This document shows, one piece after another, positions 11,180 through 56,200 of a stretch of 64,000 nucleotides of DNA. The notes below the pieces were generated by a model. It made no database searches, was not told the DNA's origin, and saw nothing but the letters and a program-made list of their open reading frames with translations. Made by a program: the position numbers and the translations under genes. This DNA is from Geosiphon pyriformis uo1 (lineage: Eukaryota > Fungi > Glomeromycota), in assembly GCA_016748015.1 (NCBI GenBank), contig JAAOMT010000294.1, positions 40,541-104,540 of the forward strand, given 5' to 3'. How positions within the stretch are numbered: position 1 is the first letter of the stretch; each line of letters begins with the position of its first letter.

Positions 11180-14100
11180 ATGTCTTCAACTTCATCAATT
11201 GAAACCTCAACTTCCCTCTTTAACTGTCTTGAAGGAACATTCATTATCATCAAAGAAAAATTGGCTATTTTTCCTACAAGTCAATATTTAAAAATTTCTG
11301 ATATAGTGAAAATTTATCTTAAACGCAATGAGAAAACGCCCGAGGATTTCTTTAATTGCTTGAATAACGAAATCTCAACTAATTCGAGACACTATATTTT
11401 GCTTGGCTTTTCTTTAGCATATGGGATTGGAACAACTCCTGATTCGAAAAAAGCATTTTTGGAATTTGAAAAGGCAGCTAATACAGACGACTCTTTTGGT
11501 CAACTTTTTTTAGGTCATTGTTACATCCACGGAATTGGTACTTTACAAGATTTAGGCAAAGCATTCGAACTCTACTCAAAAGCAACAGAGGCTGGAAATT
11601 TAAGTGCACAAGTTAATCTTGGCTTATGTTATGAAACTGGATTAGGAATCGTGACAAATCAGAAAAAAGCATTTGAACTTTATTCAGAAGCAGAAAAGAA
11701 GGGAAATTTATACGCACAAAACTGTCTTGGAGTATGTTATGAAAATGCACTAGGAATAGCGGAAAATTTGAAAAAAGCATTTAAACTCTATTCAAGAGCA
11801 GCAAACGCTGGAAATTCAGATGCACAAATTAATCTTGCATGTTGTTATGAAAATGGATGGGGAACAACGAGAAACCTAGAAAAAGCAATTGAATTCTATT
11901 CAAAAGCAGCAGAGGAGAAAAATTCACATGCACAAAATCATCTTGGATGGTGTTTTGAAAATGGATGGGGAACAACGAGAAACCTAGAAAAAGCGTTTGA
12001 ATTCTATTCAAAAGCAGCAGAGGAGGGAAATTCATATGCACAAAACCATCTTGGATGGTGTTATGAAAATGGATGGGGAACGACGAGAAACGTAGAAAAA
12101 GCATTTAAATTCTATTCAGCAGCGGCAGAAGCGGGAAATTCAAATGGACAATATAATCTTGGAATATATTATGAAAAAGGATGGGGAACAACGAGTAACC
12201 TAGAAAAGGCATTTAAACTCTATTCAAAAGCAGCAGAGGCTGGAAATTCAAATGCACAATACAATCTTGGAAATTGTTATATAAATGGATTTGGAATAAC
12301 GAAAAACCCGGTAAAAGCATTCGAACTCTATTCAAAAGCTGCAGAGGCTGGAAATTCAGATGCAAAGTATAACCTTGGACTGTTTTATATGAATGGATTG
12401 GGAGCAACAAAAGACCGGGAAAAACCATTCAACCTCTCTCCAGAAGCAACAGGGAGGGGAAATTCAGAGGCACGAAACAATCGTGAACTATATTATAAAA
12501 ATGAGTGGGGAACAACGAAAAATTCGAGAAATTCATGTAAAATCTTTTTAAAACCAACAGAAGCTGGAAGTTTAATCCCACAAACCAATCTTGGAACTTA
12601 TCGTCGAAATAGATTTGAAACAATCAAAGATCTGGAAAAAGTTAGAAACCCGAATGGATGGGGAACAGCGAAATTTTTGGAAAATTCATTTAAATCCCAT
12701 TCAACAGCAGCAGAGGCGGGAAATCTAAATGCGCAGTATAATCTTGGATGGTGCTATCAAAATGGATGTGGAACGACAAAAAACCTAGAAAAAGCGCTTG
12801 AACTTTATTTAAAAGTAACAGAAGCAAATAACTCGAGTTACCCAAATGATTTTCCTGATTTAAATGCCCATGACCTTATTTCAAATTTTGAAGCCTTCTT
12901 TGACCAGCTTTCAGATGAATTTAAGTGCCTTAAATGTGGCAACTTGCTCATAATCATTATCGGATCTCCTATATGTACTTTTTGTGATACTGATAAATGT
13001 GATAAAATTATATATAGAGCCAGCTTGCCGAAATGTCCAGAATGCTATAGAATATTAAAAGATCCAATTTGGTGTAAAGATTGTGAATGTTCACGACTTT
13101 CAAAGATTTTGGGAACATGGACTAGTGGAAATAATAATATTGATAAATATATAAGATATACACAGACTATTTCTGAAAGCTGCAGAGAATGTTTAGAATG
13201 GATTTCTCCCGACCAGATTGAATTTTTAGATAAAGTGGGAGAGGGAGGGTTTGGTGTTGTTAAAAAAGGTAGTTGGAAGAGAGGAAAAATTCTATTTTGG
13301 GACGAGAACAATCAAAAACATGAACGAAGTGGGGTTACAAAAGTCGCTTTTAAATGTCTTAAAGACAGCCAAAATATAAATAATATCAATTCAAGTGAGG
13401 TATTTCCTTTTAAGAAATCTGTGTGATTTTTATTATCCCTATTTCTCTTCTTTTCTTTTTTTTCTAACTCTAAAAAATATATTGAAATAGTTTGTTGCCC
13501 ATCTCAAATGTGCTTCCTCCCAGCATATCCTTGAATGTTATGGAATCACAAAAGACATTAGAACCAATGAATACGTGATGGTTTTACCATTTGCAGAACA
13601 CGGGGATCTCAGAGCTTTTTTAGAAGTGAACGAGACCACTCTTACTTGGAGCATGTTTCTACGTATTCTTCTTCAAATCGCCAGTGGTCTAAGATTTATC
13701 CATGGGTCAAAACTGGTGCATGGGGACTTGCATCCTGGAAATATCCTTGTATTGAAAACAGATCCCTTAAAAGTTGTCATTTCTGATCTTGGACTCTGTC
13801 GTCCTGCAGATTACGATCTGCAGTCTGGAAAAATTTATGGTGTTCTTGAGTATCTTGCGCCTGAAATTTGCAAGGGGAGTTATCATACTAAGTATAGCGA
13901 TATATACAGCTTTGCTATCATTTCATGTGAAATTATATCGGGAGAAACCTTTGAATAATACACATCCTATTTACGTGCGTTTTGATGTGATTGATGGAAA
14001 GCGTCCTATAATCAAAAAACATACACCTCAATGTATTCGGGAAATGATTGAAAAAAATTGGCAATATGATCCGTATTGCCGTGATTCTGCAGAACAACTT

Positions 14101-14380
14101 CAACAAAAAGTCATTGCTGCTCGTAAAAACTGTAACCTAAACGAACCTATTCGCCAAAAAAAGCTTAATTTTGAAGAGATCCAAGATGCTACCCATAATA
14201 CAGCAAGATATAAAGCTCAATCAACCTGGAACATTACAAAAGAAGAAACCCCTAGTTGGTTACAATCTGCATGTTCTACGAATGGTAAGTTTTTCGTTGA
14301 TTGTATTCAAATATTTAAAAAACTATTTTCACTATAAAATACCTTTTTTTTTTTTTTTAGAGCGAGATTGTGCGATCTAA
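11180..14380 (+). CDS. Sel1-repeat + CxxC zinc-ribbon + TKL-type non-RD protein kinase; frameshifted in the kinase C-lobe near 13945 (possible pseudogene). Introns 13400-13490 and 14285-14360
   Basis: About 10 clear Sel1 units plus degenerate ones; four CxxC pairs; WTSGN..ID motif; GEGGFG, VAFK, HGDLHPGNIL, DLG, YLAPE and SDIYSF. After ISGE the kinase continues in another frame (KPLNNTHP..GKRPII..CI..W..DP..R). Confidence 0.88.
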
Positions 14381-18489: not shown

Positions 18490-18610
18490 TTATAAATTAG
18501 TTTATATAGGCCGGATGGGTTGTAATGGGCAGTATTATGCAATGCCTATTATTTCCTGCATGGCAACTGTAAGACTAAGGCTCCATCAAGCAATGCCTGG
18601 AGGAAGATTC
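18490..18610 (-). ncRNA. Candidate omegaRNA scaffold plus flank-derived guide at the element right end
   Basis: Position follows from TnpB/Fanzor biology. Short complementary blocks are visible (GGCA/TGCC, GATGG/CCATC). Boundaries are unverified. Confidence 0.35.
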
Positions 18611-19990
18611 CGAGGACCCTCCGATTCCCTAGATGTTACCATATTGCCTACAAATCTTGAATGTCCAAGCTTCATTCTGGATAATAACACAGACCCTAAT
18701 TCCTTGGCCTTGGCGATCAGGCATTGTCAAAAGCAATAATGCATCTAATAAAAGATTATCGGCACAGTTTTTCGTGTAATCTTTCTTTTCTTGCGATTCA
18801 TCACGTCTGACACTTTAAAAGGAGGAATGACAATGGCGTCGAATTCGCGGGTAAAGAATCCAACCAATTTCCAATGAATTTCACTTTGTAGATGTATAGA
18901 TTTTCACCGCTTTTATTCTTACTTTTTGAGGGGATACTACTAACCTATCCTTTTAGGAGATGATATCGTCCAAGTACTTGCAAATACGAACTATACGTGC
19001 AATAGAATTTTCACAAATCTTGACTACGTCTTTTGTGGGAGAGTATCATGTAAAAGGTGTAGAGACACCGGGATCAATGGAGACTGCACGAACAGAGCCA
19101 TCCGCTTGGGTTTCGCGGAGCTGTTTTTGCGTCTCGTATAACCAGGCAAACTTCCACTCGTTAGTTTCACGAGAGTAAGTGAGCTTGCCATCCGGCATTA
19201 TCTTGTAAGGAACGGGTCACCTATTATTATGCCTCTTTTTACAAAGTAAAGCACGCTTGTCATTATCCAGAATGGTGGCGTATAACGATGTGTAGTAAAC
19301 ATCGACGGATCATGGAGATGAGTGAATTCTGTCCATAAATTGTTATTTTTTGTCGTAGATCTTTTCGAGATCGAAATGATAGTCCTTGCCGATTCGCATT
19401 ACTTCTTCCCAACACTCAATGCTTCATCAATAATATTGCCTCACTCATTTAGCAGCTTTTTGGAGTTTCTTGTCTTCGTGTTCATTAGTGCCTTTTCCTG
19501 CCCAAACATCTGTGTAAAGCTTAAGTTTATATTTGATGGATTGAGACTTTATCCAATCCTGTTGTGATTGACCAGTATGGGAATTTTCGGTATAAAAGTG
19601 GCGATGTCGACTACACCAAACAACATTAATCTCGTAAAGCCCATCCATCACTTCAAGAGCTGGTTTTGAGGATGTTCGGATACATTTTTATTAATAGTGT
19701 ACGGTTGGGAGCACCTTCCATTTCCTGACGTTTGCAACGAGCTGCTGTCGCTTTTCTCTGCTCTGACGCTCTCGTCAATGGCAAGCAGCTCCGCTTCCTT
19801 GCGTGCAGATAAGACTGTGTTAATGGCAAGAATGTCTTGAGAGCTCATGCTCGTCGGGGATCACATCGTCGAAGAGGAACATGAGTTTTGCAGAATTGAG
19901 GAAAAAGTATTAGAGACCATTCCGCGCTTTGTTAGTTCCAATAGGGTCTCAAGTCCCGATCGTTTGAAGTTGATACCTGACCCGATATCG
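18549..19990 (-). pseudogene. tnpB: Fanzor2/TnpB RNA-guided endonuclease remnant
   Basis: N-terminal STSNDRDLRPYWN; HTH RTLLIKMYP..QNQLLK*WMG; RuvC-I AVSIDPGVSTPFT*YSP (D at 19075); ARIVRICKYLDDIIS; EIHWKLVGFFTREFDAIVIPPFKVSD; HYCF*QCLIAKAKELG; IIQNEAWTFKIC (E at 18673); GIFLQAL. Multiple stops and frameshifts. Confidence 0.9.
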
Positions 19991-20075
19991 CCTAAGAGTT
20001 CGTAGGTTGGAAATCGAGGAGTCGCTCGAGATCCTCTTTTTGTTTTGTACTAGAGAGACGGGGGTGGTAACAGCA
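19760..20075 (-). pseudogene. tnpA: IS607-type TnpA serine recombinase remnant
   Basis: Across frameshifts: R(L/V)SSTKQK-EDLER (from 20060), PTYELLGDIGSGINFKRSGLETLLELTKRGMVS, EHEL-QDILAINTVLSAR and QG..AA...RERQ. No N-terminal MerR-like HTH was found. Confidence 0.85.
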
Positions 20076-21015
20076 TTTTGAGAAGTTATCCCAGGAAAAA
20101 GGGAACTGATGATCATGTCTAACTCCCAATGAAGATCAAACCTAAAGATATTAGCCTGAGAATAAGAACTATTCTTCCATCCTTCTCAGCCAAATTATTT
20201 TCGATTACATACATCCACAATAGAAACCAATCTACCATTTTTATCTTGTGGTAAATGATGAGAATTCCCAAATTTATTTTTTTCACAGTGAAAAAAACAG
20301 ATGTCACTTTTTTTTATCTCGAGTACTATTTATATGTGCTTGTGTATGATTAAATTTGAGTTTGGAGGAGTGTGCGTGTATATATATATATATAATTTTC
20401 CACGATATGTGCATCATTCAGTAAGTGGATAAAATAATTACATACAAAAATAAGTGTAAAAAATAGTATAGGGGTAAGAGGAAATGCCGTTTTTTTTTTG
20501 GAAAAGCATACCAAATAATATCAATAATGTGATGTTAAAAATGTAAAGGAAAAAAGATATACAAAGAATAAAATAAAATAAAAGGGAAAACTATGTATAA
20601 GTGTAGGGGTGTATGTATAAAGCAGTATTTATAAAGAAATCAGAAAGATTGTTTTGGCCTGAAAGGACTGATTGAGGGGGGGGGGTATATTGAAGCTATT
20701 GGTAATATCAGCATTGAGTAAAACAACATCGGAAGCAAAAATGCACAAGATCCATAAACTACAATTCTAAATCCGTGAATCTCGTGACCCGTCAGATTGA
20801 AAAGATAAAAAGAAGCCAAAGCTATGAAAAGAAAGCTTGATCGATTATTTCACTGCCACACCATTCCCTATTAGCTATTAAAGCGAAAAGTCCATTCCCT
20901 GACCCCCCTTCCTTACCGGTAGTATCAATAATCTCACTAAAAATCAACGATAGAACACATTTGTCATAATCGACCAAAGACAATTATTCAACTCTTTTCA
21001 ATACTCTCGTCAAAA

Positions 21016-23876
21016 TCAATTTTCCCTTGAAGTATTACTTGAAGGTATACTGGTAGTACTTGATCTTTTGTTTGCTTTTGTTCCGGCCTTATTAATTGCA
21101 TTCAATTTTAGCCCATTAACTTTTTCATTCAAAGAACCAGAAGAATCTGAACTAGAAGATGTGGCAGAATTGCAAGAATCTGATGATGAAGATCTGACTA
21201 CATGACAAACTGATTCGTTGTTTTGTAATGGGTGATTAGGGTGGTTATTTTCACGATGATTATGATGATACCCATTATGACCATTGTTTTGATTATAATG
21301 GACTGGTTGATATGATGCAGGATGAGAATGAGCACTTGGAAGAACTATCCAACTACTTCTCCTTATAAGGTCCGGAGCACTTCCCGGTGTCATATTTGTT
21401 ATTCCATTGACACCATGTTGTAGATTAACTCGTCCGTTACCATTAACTGTCGAGGAATTCATTGGTATTGGTAAGGTTGTCGATCCATTTGGATTTATAT
21501 TCCTTACATCACTAGAAGGATGATTATTTCCTCCAGATACGGTAGCACCATTTGAGAGACTACTACCACTCCATGCAGGTACTGAACCACGCCTCACCAA
21601 GCCTGGACCCATGGTCTCATTCGTAGGTGTACCCGGTGAAACCGGTGAAGGCATAGAATTACTATGAAAACCACTCAACGGATATCTTGGTAATGGAGGT
21701 AATGCCAATGAAGCCCTTCTTGCGTAACTCAAAGCAGCAACAGCAGCAGAATGCGCTGCTGCTGCCATTGTTGCAGCTGGATTAAATGTCGAACCTATTG
21801 GAGGAGGTAAAATTGTTGAAGGAGTTGTTGGAAGGGATTGTGTCGAATTTGACTGATAAGAATTTTTGTTGTTATTGTTGTATGGATAATTAGTGGAATG
21901 ATGTTGATATCCATTATTAAGATTGACAGGATTTTCATGAGACATTCGTCGCATAAGATTCGTGATACTATGAGTAGGGGAAGATGCTAAAAGAGAATTG
22001 CCATTACTAGTCAACCCGTTTACATTGCCATTATATTTTATAGATGAAGCTATTCCTAATGACGGTAATGTTGTGCCATTAGGATTTGGTGGTGGTCCAG
22101 GTGGAAAAGGAGGAGCAGCAGCAGTTCGGTACGCATGATCCTCTGGATTCAACGTAGGTTTTGGTGAAGAATGTCTTTGATTAAATTGTTGTAAATCATC
22201 ACTTAAATCTCCACTTCGAAAGCGGCTAATGTTGAGTAAAGAACCGCTACTACTTGCACGCTTGATTGTGGATCCTAAACTATAAGACCTTTGATGTTGA
22301 GATTGATGATGAGTATGATGAGGATATGGTTTGTGTATATGATGAGTATTAATTACTCCTCCAGGATAAGGAGCACGCATGGGTGAACCATTAAGGGAAG
22401 ATAGTTGTGAAGAATTACCAAGGCTAGTCATGGAAGAATTTGGAGATGTTCCAGAATATGAACCTGTACGAACTGGTGGTGTACTGGAGCCTTGACTTGA
22501 ATGTATTTGAGGTGAAGATGTCAAAGAATGATATGAGCCATTAATGTTTAATGATTTTGTTGAAGAGAAACTACTATCTCGACGATGTCCACGACTAAGA
22601 TATGGATGATCAGTCTGATCTTCTTCTTTCATAGCTTTTGACCCTCCCCCTTTACTTGTATTGGTATCATCTGTCGAAGGGATTCTCCGTGATCTTTTAT
22701 TTATAATATTTGGATTTTGTGAATCCCATCTATTACCATTAGTACCATTTTGAAATCGGGGGCTTTCATATGTTCCGCTTTGTCTAATATCTTCTTCAAA
22801 GTCCCAATGTTTCAACAATTGGTCTCCATATCTTTGTAATTCCTCTATGTTAATCGCAAGGCGAAAGTCGTTTAATATAAGAAATTCTAATTCAAGCTGA
22901 TTTAATTCGGATACTGGTAAACCTCCAACCTATTAGAATTTGTTTTAAAGATGACAAAGAAAATTTTAATAAATTCGTTTTTCTGAAAAATTCATTGAGA
23001 GAATCACCCCAGGAAAAACTTGAGAGAATATATGCGCTGTGAAATTGGATGAAAAGGTAGAATAAATATTCAAGGAGGATCATTAGATCGCCTTCCAGGA
23101 TGATTGCCGAAGAAAATGCAATTCATTTTGCATCTTAAGTAAGAGATCATCCGGAAAATCCATCAATTCGAAATAATAGAAAGGTAAGGATTTTTGTTTT
23201 GCGACATGTTTGAGATCACTTGAAGTACCGCGAGTATTTTTCTTGGGTTTATTAAGAACTTAACCTAGATCCAACTTAACAGTCCAATAAAAGGACATTC
23301 CTTTCATCACATTACCTGTATTGATGATGTAAATTTTGTGGAAACTGGCATATACTACTATACCTTTGCGTATCTCGAGTTTGTAAAAAATACGTCGGAG
23401 AAGAACTTGGAAGACACCATAATACCGGATATGATCAATCGGTGAATGTTAAAGGAATCTATAGAGAAAGGCTTGCCAGTAGTAGCTATGGCGTTCTTGG
23501 ACATACGATCAAAATAAACTAACAAGGAGAGAAAACATTCATTTGTGGTGGGACAGTACTTTAAAATACGCGCCAGATATGAGTAAATGTCTATTGATGG
23601 AACTGAGCGTGCATGAAAACGGGTAAAGGAAGGGGAAGTAGAAGTGGAAGTAGAAGTGGAAGTAGAGGTGGAAGTAGAGGTAGAAGTAGAGGTAGAGTTG
23701 GAAGTGGAAGTGGAAGTGGGAGTGGAGGGTGTTACTGTCGTGCTACTACTCTCGTTATGGTTAATATTGTGTGATTTCAATTGGTCGTTGGCCTGAGTTA
23801 TCTTTTCAAGAAGTGAGGCCAACATCTTGAGCGTGTCTGTTACGGGAAAATTTGCCAAGTCCAGAGTATGCATCAT
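21016..23876 (-). CDS. PHO80/PCL-family (Pho85) cyclin, PCL6/7-like, with long low-complexity C-terminal tail; exons 23876-23364 and 22929-21016
   Basis: FHARSVPSIDIYSYLARILKYCP..ECFLSLLVYFDRM, NIHRLIISGIMVSSKFFSDVFFTNSRYAK spliced in frame to VGGLPVSELNQLELEFLILNDFRL. Contains a (ST)n repeat at about 23637-23725. Confidence 0.92.
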
Positions 23877-35965: not shown

Positions 35966-38900
35966 CTACACACCTATATAAACACAGGGACAACTATCTA
36001 GACCCAAAAAAAAAAGACAAGGCCTGTGATGGACAAAACTGATAGCAAAAGACTCAGCAATGCCAAGCATCTTCACCACACTATCTGAAAGCACAGAACA
36101 CACCCTATGTGACAAACCTGAAACTAAACAATTATTACCAACCAAGCCAGTCTTCTCCATGTCTGCTCTGAATTTAGATCTAACCAACCAAATCCTGGAT
36201 CAATACAGCTCAACCAAAAACCTCACAAACTCAACCACCACTTTGGAGACTTTTCCAGCATCCTCAAAAACACCCACTGCCTCAACAACCCAACTCTTTA
36301 TCACAAAACCCTTACACAAAACCAAATACCCACCAACATCCAAGCGACAAGAATTAAGAACTCTAAGAACAGAAGAGGAAAACAGATCACAATTGCCAAC
36401 CAGAGATGCCCAGCACATAGAAGCCTCTAGCAAAATTTCCGTCCAGGTGTGAACATCCTGCGAACAAGTAAAAACATGGTCTGGCAGTTCTACCTCCCCA
36501 TACAACAAACACTAAACACCTGGGTAACATTTATTATATAACCTTTTTCTGACAGCCACCGGCAATTTTTTGTGTACAGCTTTCATTAAATATGTTTGAA
36601 GATCAGCCAATTTCTGGCTAGTAAACCCAACAAGCATATATGAGTCAGGATGCCAGACCTTCGCCAAAGCAACCCAATCAAAATCCCCCAACATGTCAAC
36701 TGAGACCACATCCTGGTCTGGATTAGTCTCCCAGTGAGCACAACAAATAGATCTAAACACATCCCTAACAAAGTGGCAGGCATTGCCTGAAATCACAGTG
36801 TTCTCAGCCATCAAACAACACTCCCATACTCTTATTGGCAAAACATAGGAAGAGCCAGCAGCTTCACCTGCAAACTTATCAGCTCTCACGTTGCCAAGAA
36901 CACCAGCATGATCTTTGACTTTGACCCAACTCATACTGAAATCCTTATCCCTAATCAAGTTAAAAATATGCCTCCTTTCGATCCAGCAGTAATTACGAAA
37001 GTTCAGAACGAGAAACAATAACTCAGAAACACAAGCATCAATTGCAGCTTGGCTGTCGAGATGCAAAACCACAGAACAAGATGATGGAACACACTCTAAA
37101 GCCAGAGCAACAGCCTGCAACTCAGCCATAGTAGAAGATAAAAGGCCAAAAACCCTGACACCAACACTCAAATCTAAAGCTGGGAAGTACGCAGCAGTAC
37201 CACTCGACACATCACCAGATCCAGCATCTCTTAAGAGCCCATCTGTATACACCTCAAAACAGCCAGACCAAATCTCATGTAAACCATCCCGTACAGAAGA
37301 AAACACATCAAAGCCCATAATACTCAAACCACCAAAATGGACAGCACCAGTAAAGCCCAGAGAAAAAAAACTCTAATTCAGAAAAAACTTAGAAGTGACT
37401 GCAAACCAATGAAGCACAGGGCCCCATGGATCCAAACATTTCCAGTGACCAAAAGTCTTTCAATCCAACAACTCCCCCTTCTTATTGAAAAGCTGATCAC
37501 CAAAAGCAACACCAAAGTGTTTAAGAGACCGAACAGAACTAAAATAAAGAGATTCCCCAAGAATTGAAGACATCGGAAAATGGCCAGAATAATGAAAAGC
37601 ACTAAAAATGTTGTTTACCAAAGAAAGATTATTGTTCAAAAGAATCTTCACAACACCTGCCAAAAAATTGTTTACCAGACTAACACGCAACTTGACAGGA
37701 AATTGAAAAGGATCCAAAAGAGCCCAACCCAGAACCTGCAAGTCTAGGAATCTATGCTCAAACAAGTGGCCAAGAATGCCAGAGGCATTAGCAAAAGAGA
37801 TCAAAGAAGCCACCTTCCTCTCAAACTGCACTTGCTTAAAAGACTTCAGACCATACAGTAAAGGATGATGCAGAACAGAATCAGAAAAATCACGAGGCAA
37901 ACATGCTTTGGATTTGAGGCCCTTTCTGACCAAAACGTCCCACTTGCAGCACACACCAGACAAAACAAAACTAAACTGCATTCGATAACTAACAATGGGC
38001 TGTAAGACAGCTGAGACCAAATAGGAAAACTGTTTATCCATGATCGCTTTTCTGAATACCACATTGATGAAAAACTGAACATCTGAGTGAGCCTTGGCCA
38101 GATTGGATTTGGACAATCTTTCAGTTGACAAAAAAATTCCCAAATATCTGTAAGTCTTACCCTTCTTTGCAATAGAAATCAGCTAATCACTTATATTTAA
38201 AGAAGCAATCTTGACACCCTGATTAATTGGTATGGCCACTGTCTTCTTATTGTTTATAGAAATATTGTTGATAAAAAAGAACTTACTAACAATGTTTAAA
38301 GCATACTGCATGGAAGCCTGGCAATCTCCAATTCAAATCATATCATCCACAAAAGTGCCAGCTGCAAAGAAGGAAGTCATCCTATCACTATTCTCAATCC
38401 TGCCAGTTTTCACCACAAACTTAGTATTAACGCGATATCCACACAAATGCTTATGCCTTTTAATTTCACATAAAAGTGGATCATAAAAGATCCTCCAAAG
38501 AAGAGGCGAAAAGACTTTACCCTAATCAAGACCATCATGTACCCTATAACCACCTGAAAAACCAAAATCAGTCATCACTCTATTAACTCTATTTATATGG
38601 ATACTACCAAAAAAGCCAATAAACCTTTTACACATTTTGATACGACACAGGCTAGGTCTCAAGAGATGCCAACCAACAAAATTATATGTCTTGTGCATAT
38701 CCTGCAAAACCAACCAAAGTTTCCTATTTTTCTTAAGAACATCTTTGACCACCAATCCAATAGCAAACATAAGAGATTGAGTAGAAGTACCCTTCAGCAC
38801 TGAAAAATTGTCACCATGAAGAACGTCAAACTTGTCACATGTGAAGGAGATTCTGTCTAAGAGAATTTTGGAGAGAATTTTTCTGGCTGTTTCAATCAGA

Positions 38901-40657
38901 GCAATAGGGTGAGTATTCATTAAAATCCCATCCCAATTATAAGGTTTTGGTATCATTGAGACCCAGGCTTTCTTCCACAAAGCAGACACAGAACCAACAG
39001 ATAGACACGGATTCAACAACACCAAGAGACACTCTATCATCCTCTCACCACTATGTTTCCAAAGTTCATTAAGGATGCCGGATAAGCCAGCAGCTTTATC
39101 ATCAGGCAAATCACCAATGACCAAAAGCAACTCATTCAAACTGACTGCACTCATAACACCAGAAAAAGTATTATCCTTAACATGAGCCAAGGGAGCATAC
39201 TAATGGGCCCAAAGATCTGGCAGTACTGAAGGCACCACCTGCCTCCTCATTCAACCCTCCATAATTTCATCAACCTTCAATTTTACTTCCTTCAGCTCCA
39301 AAACAAGCTTATCATCAACAATCAAATGATCCAGAACAACCTTCCAAAAGGGCCGATCTAAAACACACCTAATCATGCTACCTTTGTCAGAACAAAATTT
39401 TTTCATGGGCTTCTCAATAGCATCCCTAATAGAGGTTTTCTGTAACAATTTCGATTCATACATCTTGGATTTCCTGTACCCTCTCTTGATGATTGATAAA
39501 AACTTGAGAATATTAACTCCTTTCCGATCAGACTGAACCATATCCACCAAAACAAGAGCCTTATCAGCATCTAACATAAACCATTTCTGCACAAGGCAAT
39601 CAAAATTAGAGGTATTAGCCAAACCAAAATTTTTGACAATTTTGATGATTAGCAACTCCAAGCCCAAAAACTTAAAGGAATGTTTGTTTTTTGAACACCA
39701 AAACTCATTAAACCAACACTGAGAAAATGTTTTGTTTGCAGAATTCACCAACACCTTTTTCAGCAACAACCACATAATATCCAAATTTAGCTCTGCAGCA
39801 GTGACATAAAATTCATCTATTACACCCAAGATCATGGCAGAGGAGCAGTCCTTAAAACGAGACCATCCAGCATCATCAGCATTTTTGATATTAAACTTTC
39901 AACAATTCTTGTTAGTCTGCTTGCGCAAGCTATTCAAATGGACATCTAAGAGTTCACCCAAACCAATAGAAACCATAACAGTATTGTGATCAGTATTAAA
40001 AAAGTCCGAAACAGAGCCAACCCTATGGCCAGCAACAGCAGAAACCAAATTCTCATTAACAAAGATGAAATTAATGGTTTTCTTGACCCCCCTAGAATTA
40101 TTCTATGTAGAAATCCCAATCAAAGGTTGGCCAACAAATAAATTGACCAAACTCAAACCCAAGCAGAATTTGAAACTTGCACTCCTTTCTGATCTATCTT
40201 TGTTGAAGTCACTACCAAGAACAACAAAGGTGCTGGAGTTAATGGCCTTAGCAATAAGAGAATTTACCTCAGAAGCCTGACCAAAATGAACACTAGAAGA
40301 GACATTGGCATACAAACCAATAACAGAAACCAAAAGTTTATTTCTGAACAAAAGCTGCACAGCAATAACCTGGCCAGAAACCTCCTCAACCTTAGAAACA
40401 TGACGAGCCAAAGAATTGTTCATGATAATGGCAACACCAGCACTAAAAAAACCAACATCCAAACCAAAAGTAAAAATTTGAACACCATCAAATTTATCCT
40501 TGATCCAAGAATCAATAGAAGATCTTAATTTTGTCTCAGTAACAAAAGACACTGTCAAACCAGATTTCACATGCCAATGGAGAACATCCACCTGCTTCGC
40601 AGGAATATTGATACCTCAGACATTACACATTGCAATTTTCCATATCAAAGCACTCAT
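35966..40657 (-). pseudogene. LINE ORF2 (endonuclease, reverse transcriptase, RNase H), disrupted
   Basis: CNV*GIN, TETKL, GSDFN (APE); HPIALIE, QDMHKTYN, FSPLLWRIFYDPL, FVDD (RT); YTDG, AELQA, LDSQ, GNVRAD (RNase H); C-terminal HVFTC. Confidence 0.9.
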
Positions 40658-42523
40658 TGAGAAGAAAAAGATAAGAGAGAACCCAAACCAGAACACAAAA
40701 GATCTAACCTAGCCAAAACAGAATTGACAAAAGCCTCCAGAGCTGACATTTTAGACTCCAAACCACCCATCTTGGTAGTTAGAACCTTCAAACTACTTGA
40801 ACTGAAACCAGCACCCAAATCAGCACTCGGAGGATGGGGAGTGGGTGATGCCAACTCACTGTCTAAAGCCATATCAAAATCCAAAACAGGGACCAAAGGC
40901 ACAGAGCCAACCAAAAGAGGAGCACCAGCAGATAGAACCATGGACACCAACTCAATAAAACTCAATTTTCTTATAATACCAGAAACCTGTTCAGTCAGCA
41001 GCTTAAGAGAGCATTCCAAAGATGCCAAACAAGTATTTAAAGAAGAATCATTAATTGTAGAAGAGGGAGAACTACCACTTAAACCTGAAATTGCAGAGGA
41101 AGAGAAGCCAACACCAAGATCAGAACCAGAAGGAGAGCCACCAGAAGAGGAAGCAAAAGAAACTACCTGAGCCCATGATTTGCCACCAAAGGCAGCAGAG
41201 CGAGAGATAGAAACATTTTTCTTTGCATATAATTTGGCCAACTGAAGATGATCTACACCAGGAGCACATTTTTTATTAAATAAACTCAAGAAATCAGAAG
41301 GTGACATATCTGACACATCACACTCTAGAGCTGAATGACCAAGATGCCCATACCTTCTACACCAAACCAAATCCAACCTAGCCCATGAGAGACAAACACC
41401 ACCAAAAACAGGCTCAGTAAGAAAAGCAGAATCCAGATCATTTTCAGATTCGAAGCTAACCACAGCACAATAAACTCTATTGCCAGTGTCTAACAAATAA
41501 TTAATAACACAAGTTTTGCCACCAGTATTATCCAAAAGATTACTAAGATCATGTGCAGTTGTTCCCACTGGCAAAGTAAACAAAAGCACCCTAAAATGAT
41601 CCCTAAAGGCCCAAATATCACGATCTCCTATGGCTTTTGCTACATGCACAGAATCTTTCCTGATTAGGAACAACTATTTCAAAGCCAACATATCAGCCTG
41701 ACTTGATTCGGTGAACTCCACCACAGCCTTCTGCCATAACCCAATTAGTTGCACTCTGATTGACTTAATTTCACCAAATTTGGCAACTATGGCAATGATC
41801 ATATCCTTTGGTGTGTTCATGAGAATTTCTTTGTCTCTTAAGATCACTGTTTACTATGATGTTATTTTCTTTGGCCAATGACATAGTCTTTTCCATGCTC
41901 TCTGATGAAGTAAACATCAATTAGATGATCTCTTTAAATTTTGAGGAAGTAGTGGCCCCCCCAAAACCATTGATTGTTGAAAATAATTTTCTGATAGCCT
42001 GAGTCTTGGTTGCTGATTTCTCCTCCATAGCAGATAGATTGATGTCCAAAGTGAACGATTTCTTCACAGCAACTTCCACTTGAGACTTAACAAATTTGAG
42101 GTCCACCCATACCTTTTCTAAAGAGAAAAACAAACGGAAAGGAAGAAAAACTTCCTCCTTATCATTCATGTCATAATTAATAGAGCCGAGAGGGAAACCG
42201 ACAACCGCACCAGTATTAAAACGCTTCACATTGGGTGTATTTATTTGGGAGTTAGAAGTGGCTCTACCATCAGAGGCTTTTCCATCCATATCCATGCTAG
42301 CATATTGTCTGTTCACACTAACAGACCCACTATCTTTGAGATTCTTATCCACACTTGAAAGTTTAACACTATTGAAAGGCTTTTTGACTTTTTGAATTGA
42401 ACCACCACTAACTGAACCAGTAGTTGAGACTCTGGCAGACCTTTTCTTAACACTAAAACCACTCATAATGGCAGCTGGTCCAACAACAAAAGGATTTGAT
42501 TCTTGTAAAATAGTGGAAGACAA
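40654..42523 (-). pseudogene. LINE ORF1 (gag-like, zinc knuckle), disrupted
   Basis: ORFs 41921-42523 and 40654-41673; knuckle C-RR-(Y)-GHLGHSALEC; C-terminal coiled coil. Confidence 0.8.
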
Positions 42524-52245: not shown

Positions 52246-53265
52246 TCAAATGATTTTATGACTTGTTGGTGGTACTTGATATGCTTTTTGTTTGATTGGC
52301 AATGCGTCTCCAGTCTTAATCTGATGTTGGATTATGTTAGTTCTGCCAAATTCATTTTCACAAGCAAAAATGTTGTTGAAGTTGTTAAATAATATCTTAA
52401 GCTGCATATATTGTAATAGGTCTAGATTTCTCAAGTTCATCTGTTTCAATTGTTTTGATTGAAGCAGATAACATTTTTTTTGTCCATAGATTGTTTGTGA
52501 TGTAATATTTACATATCTGCAAAGCTGTAGAAAATTTAAAATAGGGTTTGGTGGTTGTTTTTCAACTTCAGTACTTAAATATCTGATGGTAATTTTTTTT
52601 GGTATTTCAATGACATTTTTAGTTATGTTGTAAATAGAAGTTTTGATGTATTTAGGGCTTTTGGCTGGTATGTAAAGATTGGTAAATCCAATTTTTCTTA
52701 ATTCACAAATTGTAGCTTCTGTTTCAAATATTTGGGCCTGGTTCTTTACTTTTCTTTCTATGGCTAACATGTACTGATTATATAGTGGAATAGAGATTAA
52801 TTGATGAATAAAAATAATTTCTTCCTTGTCAATAATCTTTTCCTCTGCCATATTGACTGGTACATCTATTCTATCCATAAATCTAAATCCTTGTATCCCT
52901 CTTGCTGTTATTCTTAATTCTTTCCTTTTTTCTACTAACACTAATTGAGCTATTTTAACTAAAGGCAAGAATATTGCCTGTGCTATTTTTTTGTTTGGCT
53001 TTATAATATAAGCCTTTTCTGAATTATTTTGTAGCATTATAATAATATTTCTTATATATCCTGCATTAATTATTCCTCCTCTGATGTTGATTCCTCTTTT
53101 TGCTAGATTACTCCTTAATACTAGTTGAATTATTGTTGTTGTTAAGATTTCCAGTACTATTTTAAGATCAATGCATGTGTGTGAGTGTGGTTTTAATTTG
53201 ATGGCATCTTTTCTTGAATATCTTAGATTAAACTCAACATCAGTATTATATGCATGTTTTGGCAT
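52246..53265 (-). pseudogene. Retrotransposon dUTPase domain and linker into RT
   Basis: Decayed trimeric dUTPase motifs: (AG)FNL, RSNLA, GGIINAGY.RNI.IML.N, KIAQAIF, RGIQGF. In frame with HQIKTGDALPIKQKAY preceding RT. Confidence 0.85.
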
Positions 53266-56200
53266 AATATTTTTATCATTATTGCTGAACTATTTTAGTT
53301 TCTGCTCTTTAATAAGATTAGAGAGCGCAATGTATTGTTTGGGATTTGAATTGTAGTTTGAATTATTGTTATTTTGGTTGCTATATTGAATGGTGCTGGA
53401 ACCATTGTTATTGTTGTTGTCATTGTTAAAGTTTGAATTGAGATTGAAATTTGATTCCAATTCTACTGTGCAGCTGCTGATTGGTTCTTTTTTCTCTGGG
53501 ATTATGTAGATTATGTGTGGTGGTGGATTGTAAATGAGATCACAATTATTACAATATTCAAAATTGCTGGGAATTAAACAATATTGGCATAATCTAGTAT
53601 TCAACTGTTCTAACTATTGTTTTTGCTTTTCTTTTGTTAGTAATGCTTGTGGAATTCTTTAGAGTCATCCTCAATATTATTAAAAATGTCAAAAGTTTGA
53701 ACATATTCGGGTTTTGAAAGTGATAAGGGGTTGTTCTTGATTTTCAGTAATTCACTGGTTGTTGTGCTTTCTGCTTTCACACTCACTATTTTCTAAATCT
53801 TATGTTCATTATGGAGATATTCTTCCAATTATCACAATGTTTTTTTCCACATGTTGTTGATTGGAGTTTTTTTGTGTATTCAGTTGTTTATTAAGATAGT
53901 ATATTAACATATTTCATCACACATTCTTCTATATCCAGAAATGTTATTCCATATTCTTTTATCAAACAAGATGGTTTCATAGGCAAGACAAGGCTTATTA
54001 TCTCATTTTTTTTGTTTTTTTGGTCGTCCAAACCATTCAAGAACACAAGAATAACAATAAAATTTTGTTGCCATTGGGTATTCTTCATCATCATCACAAC
54101 ATGCATCTATTGATGACAACTTCTTGTCACAATCAATACACACCAGTTTTGGTCAGTGATAGTTAGATGGTTGTAGTAGAGTATAGATATATAAAATATA
54201 AGTTGTAATGATTGCTGGTACTGGCTTTTCTTCTTTCTCTTTTCCTTTTCTTTTTTTGGTTTCTTCCCACTTTTAATTTGGTGTCTACTTGTTCTAATTG
54301 TTATTAATCCACAATATTTAATTGTTGTTTCAAATAAGTTCCTCTTTTCACTTTTTTTTTTCTTTGTTATCTTATGAAAATATGAGTAATAGTTCATTGT
54401 AGTTGTTATCAGCCTATAAAACTTAATAGGCTTTCCAGATAGGTTTATTTTCTTTTTTTTTTAGCTCAATCAATGATTGCTTTCTTTGAAAAGCTTTAAA
54501 ATGACCACAGATGGCAGGTGTGCAAGTATGCTGTCCATTAAAATTCAACTGGAGTTTTGCATGTTCCAATCAAGAATGGCATTGGTTTTGGACAGCCAAT
54601 TATTTCCAACAAGAGCTTAATACTGAATGGCTTTTATGACTAATACTTTGATGGATATAATGATGCTATTGACTTTAAATGAGAAGTCATTGATTTTACT
54701 GATTGAAGTCTTTGTCATTCCATCAGTAGTGATAATTCAGGTGCTGGCAGTATGATCAACTTAATAACCTAATTAGTTTATAAGTTGTCAGATAATAATG
54801 CTGCTTGCTGACCCACTGTTCAAGATTAATTTGATGGAATAATTATCAGTTTTAGCATTGGTGTACATTGCAGTTATGGGTTTTTTTTTAAGGGCAGCAC
54901 CACTAAAAAGAGGCATTTTAAACTGTTTCTCAAGTTCAAATAAAAAGATGGCTGCTAACACGTTGTTATTAGTGACGGTTGCTGGTAAAATTTTGTTAAT
55001 AAGTGGTTTTTGGTTGGTTTTTAAGTTGTTGAATAAGACGTTTTTTAGGATAACCAGAAGACTTAAATAGTTCTGGGAACTCAGATTTTGGGTGTATCTA
55101 TTTCCCAAATTTTTTAGACATGATTCTGAAGGTTGTTAGAATGTGCTGAAAATCAGTTAATAAACAACCATCACCAATTTCCAGTTTTGTTAGATGGTTC
55201 TCAGCCTTTGATTTCTATTGGGCATAGTCATTTGTGACAGTATTTGAATGAGTTGCAATTAATAAATTAGTTGTGGCTACAGTGGTTAATATATTACAGA
55301 TATTGCCAGTTAATATATTAGAGGTATGTATATTGGTTGTTGTAATATTTGAGTATAATTAGGTTGGTACTAATCTTGATTTAAGTAGTAATTTGGTGTT
55401 TGAAATCTGTGATCAGAGTTTTGATATTGATTTTCCGATTATGAGTTATTGCTATAAACTTGGCAGCTAGCTTTAATGTGACTTTGTTTACCACAATTGT
55501 AATAAACATGTGTCTCTAATTGCTATGTTTGATTGGTTAATAATGATAGGCATGTCTGATTTTAGAAATGATTTGAGTTTCTTGAATTACTATGTTGTTG
55601 TAAAGATTGATAGATTGTCTAATTGTTAATTAAGTATTCCTCAATTTTCTGATTGATTGAATCACTGAATTGTTTCAATTTGAAATCCTATTTAGATAAT
55701 CTGTTTATTACTAAATTTACAGCTTGGGTATGATTAGCTTTGAGTTCAGCTGATTCAAAGTTTCTAGTATATATAACTGCTGCTTGCAAGTCAACTGGAT
55801 GTAATAAATGTACACATTAAAAGATGTTACTGTACAGACCACAGATAACTGGTTCAAAATTTGTGGTGCTGTGAAATAATTGGCATCAATGGCTTGAATT
55901 TGGCACAGATTCCTGTAGAAATGTTCTAGATAAGTAGTGACTGCTTCACTTTTTCCTTGCTTGATGGTAGTAAAGATATTTGCCAAGTGGTTAATGCTAT
56001 TATTGTTACTAAAATATCTCAAAAATTCAAGTTTGAATTCTTGAAAAGTTTGTGGTTTGACAGCTAAACTCTGATACTATGAATTAGTAATATCTTGGAA
56101 AAAATAGGGAATTGCTTGAAGAACTCTGCCATCATTTCATTTATTGGCTGTAATGGCTTTTTCCATATCATTGAGCCATACTTGGGTGTTGTCCTCTTCG

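Follow-up and report, generated by a model that had tools for sequence, protein, structure and literature searches.

The window analysed here, a 64,000-nt stretch of the Geosiphon pyriformis genome, carries a decayed IS607/Fanzor2 element on its minus strand at positions 18512-20110. The right end of this element is present, while its left terminus has been deleted or eroded, and its GC content is 0.42 versus 0.11 and 0.32 in the flanks. It starts about 900 nt downstream of the stop codon of a host cyclin gene, which lies on the same strand outside the element (21016-23876, with one GT-AG intron at 23363-22930). An earlier note, made from the sequence alone, had recognized this neighbor as a cyclin, and a match to PF08613 (E 1e-31) agrees. 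The same note had placed an IS607 transposase and a TnpB-like nuclease at 18509-20095, which was nearly right, as the right end is at 18512 and homology is detectable from about 20110. All five motifs named there were recovered on the minus strand, in two frames: DIGSGINFKRSGL (19989), QDILAINTV (19839, with DILAIN at 19836), SIDPG (19067-19081, the retained DPG signature of RuvC-I), IVIPPF (18834) and NEAWT (18676). The last of these holds the shifted RuvC-II glutamate (NEAW, 18665-18676), about 7 residues before the zinc finger.

Pfam searches with single stop-free pieces of the window gave no match to the element, and one such piece matched IS607 TnpA weakly (E 0.001). In frameshift-aware alignment, where broken copies are read with X at each break, the window copy is 54% identical to two intact Fanzor2 proteins (P0244 and P0275) over 487-506 amino acids, with scores of 729 and 797, respectively, versus at most 46 for shuffled DNA, and 53-56% identical to IS607 TnpA. 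A one-frame reading with stops read through matched P0275 at E 1e-40. The profile searches suggested in the earlier note also gave matches, family copies being found with the TnpA catalytic domain down to E 5.5e-21. The alignments thus support the claim that an IS607 TnpA and Fanzor2 element resides in an assembled fungal nuclear genome.

The tnpA remnant (19622-20110, minus strand) corresponds to about residues 42-253 of an intact IS607 serine recombinase and has no N-terminal winged helix-turn-helix (HTH). Its catalytic RLSS lies at about 20057-20046 and DIGSG at 19989, and the helix with THRDR is deleted near 19909. The Fanzor2 pseudogene (18548-20076, minus strand, likely ATG at 20076), whose first part is in the +1 frame of tnpA, is interrupted by 12 frameshifts and by 12 stops, and at five places it has lost 8 or more amino acids. 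A deletion of about 58 nt (site at 18612-18616) cost it the RuvC-III aspartate together with the second CxxC pair and also took the 5' part of omegaRNA stem 1; L044, among other copies, and the relatives still have the C4 zinc finger and this aspartate. Both marks by which Fanzor2 and pro-Fanzor proteins are defined, i.e. DPG in RuvC-I and a glutamate shifted next to the zinc finger (10.1101/2023.08.09.552727), are found in the window copy. On the features tested, this copy is what remains of an IS607 element carrying Fanzor2. It does not qualify as an autonomous element, its TnpA having no winged HTH. It can encode neither TnpA nor Fanzor2, and it is without function of its own.

The arrangement of the two genes is not the tandem cassette that had been proposed, since tnpA lies inside the 5' part of the nuclease, in another frame. 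In intact relatives the nuclease frame starts within tnpA, and the two overlap by 605-650 nt in the +1 frame. A +1-frame overlap was seen in 83 of the 85 two-gene loci fetched (bacterial, viral and metagenomic), the remaining two being in-frame fusions. Synonymous recoding of tnpA leads one to expect 4-11 stops in the overlap frame, and none was observed in 12 loci. The overlapped part carries a motif whose aligned counterpart in mimivirus Fanzor2 is residues 81-86, where Asn82 and Ser83 touch the RNA pseudoknot (PMC11832414). In the window copy, the overprinted N-terminal motifs lie at 19876-19946 (minus strand) and read PYWN and NSCS, a decayed NSWF, the second of which aligns with the RuvC-R segment of mimivirus Fanzor2 (PMC11832414). 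The clade profile aligns to the mimivirus structure (PDB 9B0L) from residue 74, that is with the RuvC-R N-terminal extension, which is decayed in the window. In a structural model of P0244 the N-terminal domain is ordered at residues 41-66 and 81-98, and 9B0L is the top fold match. The family offers a possible account of how the Fanzor2 N-terminal domain arose. Overlap of IS607 reading frames has been mentioned in general terms (PMC6188088), and our literature search found no paper treating the long tnpA/nuclease overlap. As a side observation, at two loci (L179 and L181; protein P0303) TnpA and Fanzor form a single-frame fusion of 554 and 625 amino acids from the tnpA start, with TnpA replacing the overprinted N-terminal domain; this is either a real variant or a deletion product.

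The window copy belongs to a large family. A DNA search of the genome, in which the best 40 of 174 candidates were scored, placed its subfamily at no fewer than 40 dispersed loci (66-85% DNA identity) on fungal contigs of up to 2.7 Mb, with unrelated flanks. Collecting copies of the whole clade, as the earlier note had advised, gave about 110 distinct and differently broken loci (hand count over DNA, protein and profile searches). The suggestion that intact relatives may exist in this lineage found no support in this genome: among the best candidates scored in these three kinds of search there was no intact copy, and of the copies scored none reaches a family cut-off or has a long stretch without breaks. 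Outside Geosiphon, near-intact relatives occur in Diversispora and Cetraspora, and intact relatives were found on contigs from soil and on giant-virus-like ones. Identity is about 80% among the Geosiphon copies and about 88% between a copy and the majority base. Apart from one duplicated contig end there are no close pairs, a pattern suggestive of a single old burst of insertions. Identical copies at two contig ends (C649:450158 and C783:2589) represent segmental duplication or assembly redundancy. Substitutions in the copies were C>T/G>A at 0.156 per CpG site and 0.11 at other C/G, and T>C/A>G at 0.04; CpG observed/expected ratios alone gave no separation of the copies from intact relatives. 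Among 90 deletion events in Geosiphon loci L037-L056 and the window copy, lengths of 8-12 nt are the most frequent (mode 11), and microhomology is somewhat in excess; this may be a host repair signature or else an alignment artefact.

At least three subfamilies occur in Geosiphon. The two others (L029 and L030; L031, L032 and L036) share the right-end terminus where it is readable and take separate places in the tree. A single Geosiphon clade was rejected (AU p 5e-51). A protein search also found a relative, KAG9306440.1, on a 220,616-nt Geosiphon pyriformis contig and a second one on a contig of 489,604 nt.

The subfamily of the window copy lacks the head of its transposase. In the copies examined, TnpA homology never begins before residue 42 (42-47 in the best-kept copies), HTH scores equal those of shuffles, and the N-terminal winged-HTH DNA-binding domain, present in relatives, is absent from the window and from every examined subfamily copy. 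The distance from the left end to the Fanzor start is about 90-130 nt, versus about 270 nt in intact relatives. A majority-of-copies count, for which the majority-base string served counting only, gave no stops in the Fanzor frame and no breaks in TnpA 45-253. The subfamily founder thus possessed a complete Fanzor2 frame, flanked by the two ends of the element and with the right-end omegaRNA, and it lacked tnpA codons 1 to about 42, tnpA being cut just upstream of the nuclease start. Since no examined copy has the DNA-binding head, the subfamily was most likely moved in trans by a full-length relative. Only four relics of the TnpA HTH were found in the genome (C673:54631, C692:1462705, C725:11462 and C352:206580), versus about 30 catalytic-domain matches at E<0.001, and these four are our candidates for a helper element; the C673 relic is directly upstream of a catalytic-domain match. 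In relatives, TnpA passes the NF033518 cut-off at 156-159 bits. A locus of a distant subfamily (L027) keeps the TnpA head.

The right end of the element is sharp. The terminus ATCCATCCG is common to Geosiphon copies, Cetraspora, soil contigs and virus-like contigs, and in the window it ends in CCG at 18514-18512. Left ends of family copies follow CCG or a decayed CCG; the window's own left terminus is lost, with a faint remnant at about 20105-20125, and the left-end motif occurs nowhere else in the window. CCG is shared by both junctions, and the ends are otherwise unlike. IS607 elements are expected to have a GG dinucleotide core; within the shared letters here, the candidates for a core are CC, which reads GG on the opposite strand, and CG. 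Among the 25 longest inverted repeats listed, none joins the ends, and there is no variable target duplication. Family copies and relatives have a short direct repeat, a motif of the TGCTTAGTA type, close to each end, and it is eroded in the window copy; short direct repeats near both ends are known in IS607 (PMC6188088).

At left-junction position -4, 21 genome matches gave A in 15, G in six and neither T nor C, with the reservation that the search pattern began with A and so favors A at this position. All six departures from A were G, which has a chance probability of about 1e-4; two copies that we examined have C there. The corresponding right-end position is T (TCCG). The contrast between RCCG on the left and TCCG on the right predicts a TAM that would spare the element itself. 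By analogy with ISXfa1 and ApmFNuc, the adjacent host flank at 18491-18511 (minus strand) would supply the guide.

A structured RNA can be recognized at the right end. In 24 sequences, three stems form within the last 130-145 nt, and a long-range helix of six pairs involves the terminus itself; 93% of alignment cells pair, versus 40-49% in slid controls, and 15 pairs show double changes, a result reached by none of 500 shuffles. As the long-range helix is nearly invariant, what speaks for it is its conservation and the analogy to TnpB and ApmFz2, not covariation. An omegaRNA with stems and pseudoknot is thus present for the clade and broken in the window copy, where the remnant (18512-18613, minus strand) has pseudoknot arms at 18587-18582 and 18519-18514 with one mismatch, and its last stem is partly deleted. 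Fold z-scores were -4.0 to -4.7 in intact relatives versus +0.57 in the window copy.

A maximum-likelihood tree was built from the RuvC half, after 17 of 58 rows (long-branch or redundant) had been left out. Here the window's subfamily (100/99) nests in a clade (100/99) that also takes in Diversispora epigaea, Cetraspora pellucida, soil contigs and one virus-like contig, the last being gene-dense and carrying a P11 minor-capsid domain and DUF5901. This tree, which the earlier note had proposed to build with viral and cyanobacterial relatives, groups the element with Fanzor2 and pro-Fanzor proteins. Cyanobacterial proteins form a separate clade. The position of the virus-like rows varied, being basal in one tree and nested in another. 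A scan of viral contigs with a single-protein query gave no match, and with an alignment query it gave only distant relatives (26-41%). Gene-dense giant-virus-like contigs with relatives were also noted (L250, L252 and L059), the right-end terminus being common to L059 and L252. In close soil-metagenome relatives, two sites in the Fanzor2 frame carry AT-rich GT-AG insertions (L178:1020-1110, L188:458-533 and L202:502-577; L191:651-706, L224:839-894 and L194:400-455), which are probably spliceosomal introns. The right flanks of L178 and L188 differ, and so the intron-bearing element seems to have transposed.

Horizontal acquisition, as claimed in the earlier note, stands in the deep sense. A direct source in cyanobacteria is rejected, and there is no mollicute among the 80 bacterial loci. 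The patchy presence in fungi, three separate entries into Geosiphon and the sharing with virus-like contigs favor repeated horizontal movement, and Fanzor2 has been viewed as spreading through giant viruses (PMC10530073).

Judging from sequence, we put at roughly 0.8 the probability that the window holds a dead copy of a non-autonomous IS607-type transposon with the following history. The deep origin would lie in a bacterial pro-Fanzor IS607 group, and the clade would have entered, or moved among, Glomeromycotina horizontally, with giant viruses as the most likely partners. Full-length TnpA from a rarer relative would bind the subterminal direct repeats, and a serine-recombinase exchange over a short core within CCG would move the element. 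Fanzor2 with its omegaRNA, using the right flank as guide, may then cut empty donor sites (RCCG plus flank), which would favor retention or copying of the element, whose own TCCG end would escape cutting. After one old burst, every copy would have decayed.

Several other explanations were weighed against this one. It was tempting to think of a gene taken straight from a symbiont, as Geosiphon houses both Nostoc and mollicute endobacteria (MRE; PMC13315312), pro-Fanzors are mostly cyanobacterial (10.1101/2023.08.09.552727), and relatives were present in 105 of 401 genomes of the cyanobacterial order holding Calothrix. Yet the best cyanobacterial matches to the C-terminal part of P0244 reach 50-54% versus 61-81% for fungal, soil and virus-like ones, a cyanobacterial sister of the window's subfamily was rejected (AU p 7e-62), Diversispora and Cetraspora have relatives too, and mollicutes are missing from the bacterial loci. 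Direct transfer into Geosiphon from either symbiont is therefore largely refuted and very unlikely, which removes the tempting story of Nostoc as donor. A contaminant or chimeric assembly is harder still to believe: it would be expected intact and on contigs of its own, whereas there are about 110 loci, each differently broken, with sharp shared ends and an excess of C>T/G>A.

The subfamily might also have been autonomous, a headless TnpA being made from the open frame and its catalytic core being recruited by other subunits or by Fanzor. TnpA 45-253 is indeed without stop or shift in the majority count, with YARVSS kept, but a recent pre-burst deletion would equally leave the frame open. Moreover, there is no evident in-frame start upstream of the catalytic serine, and according to a model of IS607, pairing of the ends requires the N-terminal DNA-binding domains (PMC6188088), which makes such autonomy improbable. 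We find it highly doubtful that the window copy was co-opted as a regulatory or small-RNA element of the cyclin gene. Its place downstream of that gene, on the same strand, would suit such a role; on the other hand, its decay matches that of other copies, and its RNA folds no better than shuffles.

Our preferred reading, the dead non-autonomous IS607-type transposon, can be compared with known systems. Fanzor2 has already been reported broadly in fungi (PMC10432273), and thus the kind of element is known. ISvMimi with ApmFz2 (Acanthamoeba polyphaga mimivirus Fanzor2, PDB 9B0L) likewise combines IS607 TnpA with a Fanzor2 that has DPG in RuvC-I, the shifted RuvC-II glutamate, a zinc finger, an alignable N-terminal RuvC-R motif and a pseudoknotted omegaRNA, and it is the best sequence and fold match among solved structures. 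It differs in its 19% identity to the intact relative and in its target, GGG versus the RCCG predicted here; moreover, the Geosiphon family is nuclear, multicopy and headless in tnpA, and the window copy is dead. For NlovFz2 of Naegleria lovaniensis the measured TAM is 5'-CCG (PMC10432273), the same as the junction letters here; no transposase association has been reported for NlovFz2. Bacterial IS607 pro-Fanzor elements and ISXfa1 share the lack of terminal inverted repeats and of variable target duplications, as well as the subterminal direct repeats; the +1-frame overlap is common to the bacterial members, and in ISXfa1 a one-base difference between target and right end (GGG versus CGG) prevents self-cutting (10.1101/2023.08.09.552727). 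The Geosiphon element differs from them in its separate clade and eukaryotic host, and some of its relatives have probable spliceosomal-type introns. TnpB-only derivatives (IS1341-like elements; Fanzor2* of molluscs) also keep the nuclease with no usable transposase of their own, but here most of tnpA persists beneath the nuclease frame and the ends are still those of IS607, whereas Fanzor2* has terminal inverted repeats and target site duplications (10.1101/2023.08.09.552727).

In the parts of the literature that our search could reach, no IS607 or Fanzor2 was recorded for the fungal group of Geosiphon, apart from one unrelated Cetraspora TnpB. The novelty lies in the group of hosts, in a subfamily without the transposase head, in the RCCG/TCCG prediction and in relatives with probable introns. 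In this family, a serine-recombinase transposon of bacterial type has proliferated extensively in a fungal nucleus, and for its intact natural relatives we predict an RCCG TAM and a scaffold of about 120-140 nt. In a bolder reading, Glomeromycotina would carry a naturalized IS607 clade shared with giant viruses, transposing at scale in nuclei and gaining introns in some hosts, with an RCCG TAM tuned to spare the TCCG right end and a Fanzor2 N-terminal domain born by overprinting on tnpA; we would give this whole picture an even chance of being right. If the N-terminal domain is overprinted on tnpA, a non-autonomous subfamily could drop only the first 42 codons of tnpA.

As transposition within the genome has produced many such insertions, old and dead like the window copy, its site beside the cyclin gene is uninformative on any transfer event there. 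Elsewhere in the window, a Sel1-repeat protein followed by protein-kinase exons lies at 11180-14337, and the Sel1-repeat/protein-kinase family is expanded in Glomeromycotina. Judged by eye from the list of open reading frames, the window also holds a decayed non-LTR retrotransposon with endonuclease, reverse transcriptase and RNase H pieces (36060-42523) and an LTR-type element, likewise decayed, in which one frame resembles a dUTPase (52246-56022).
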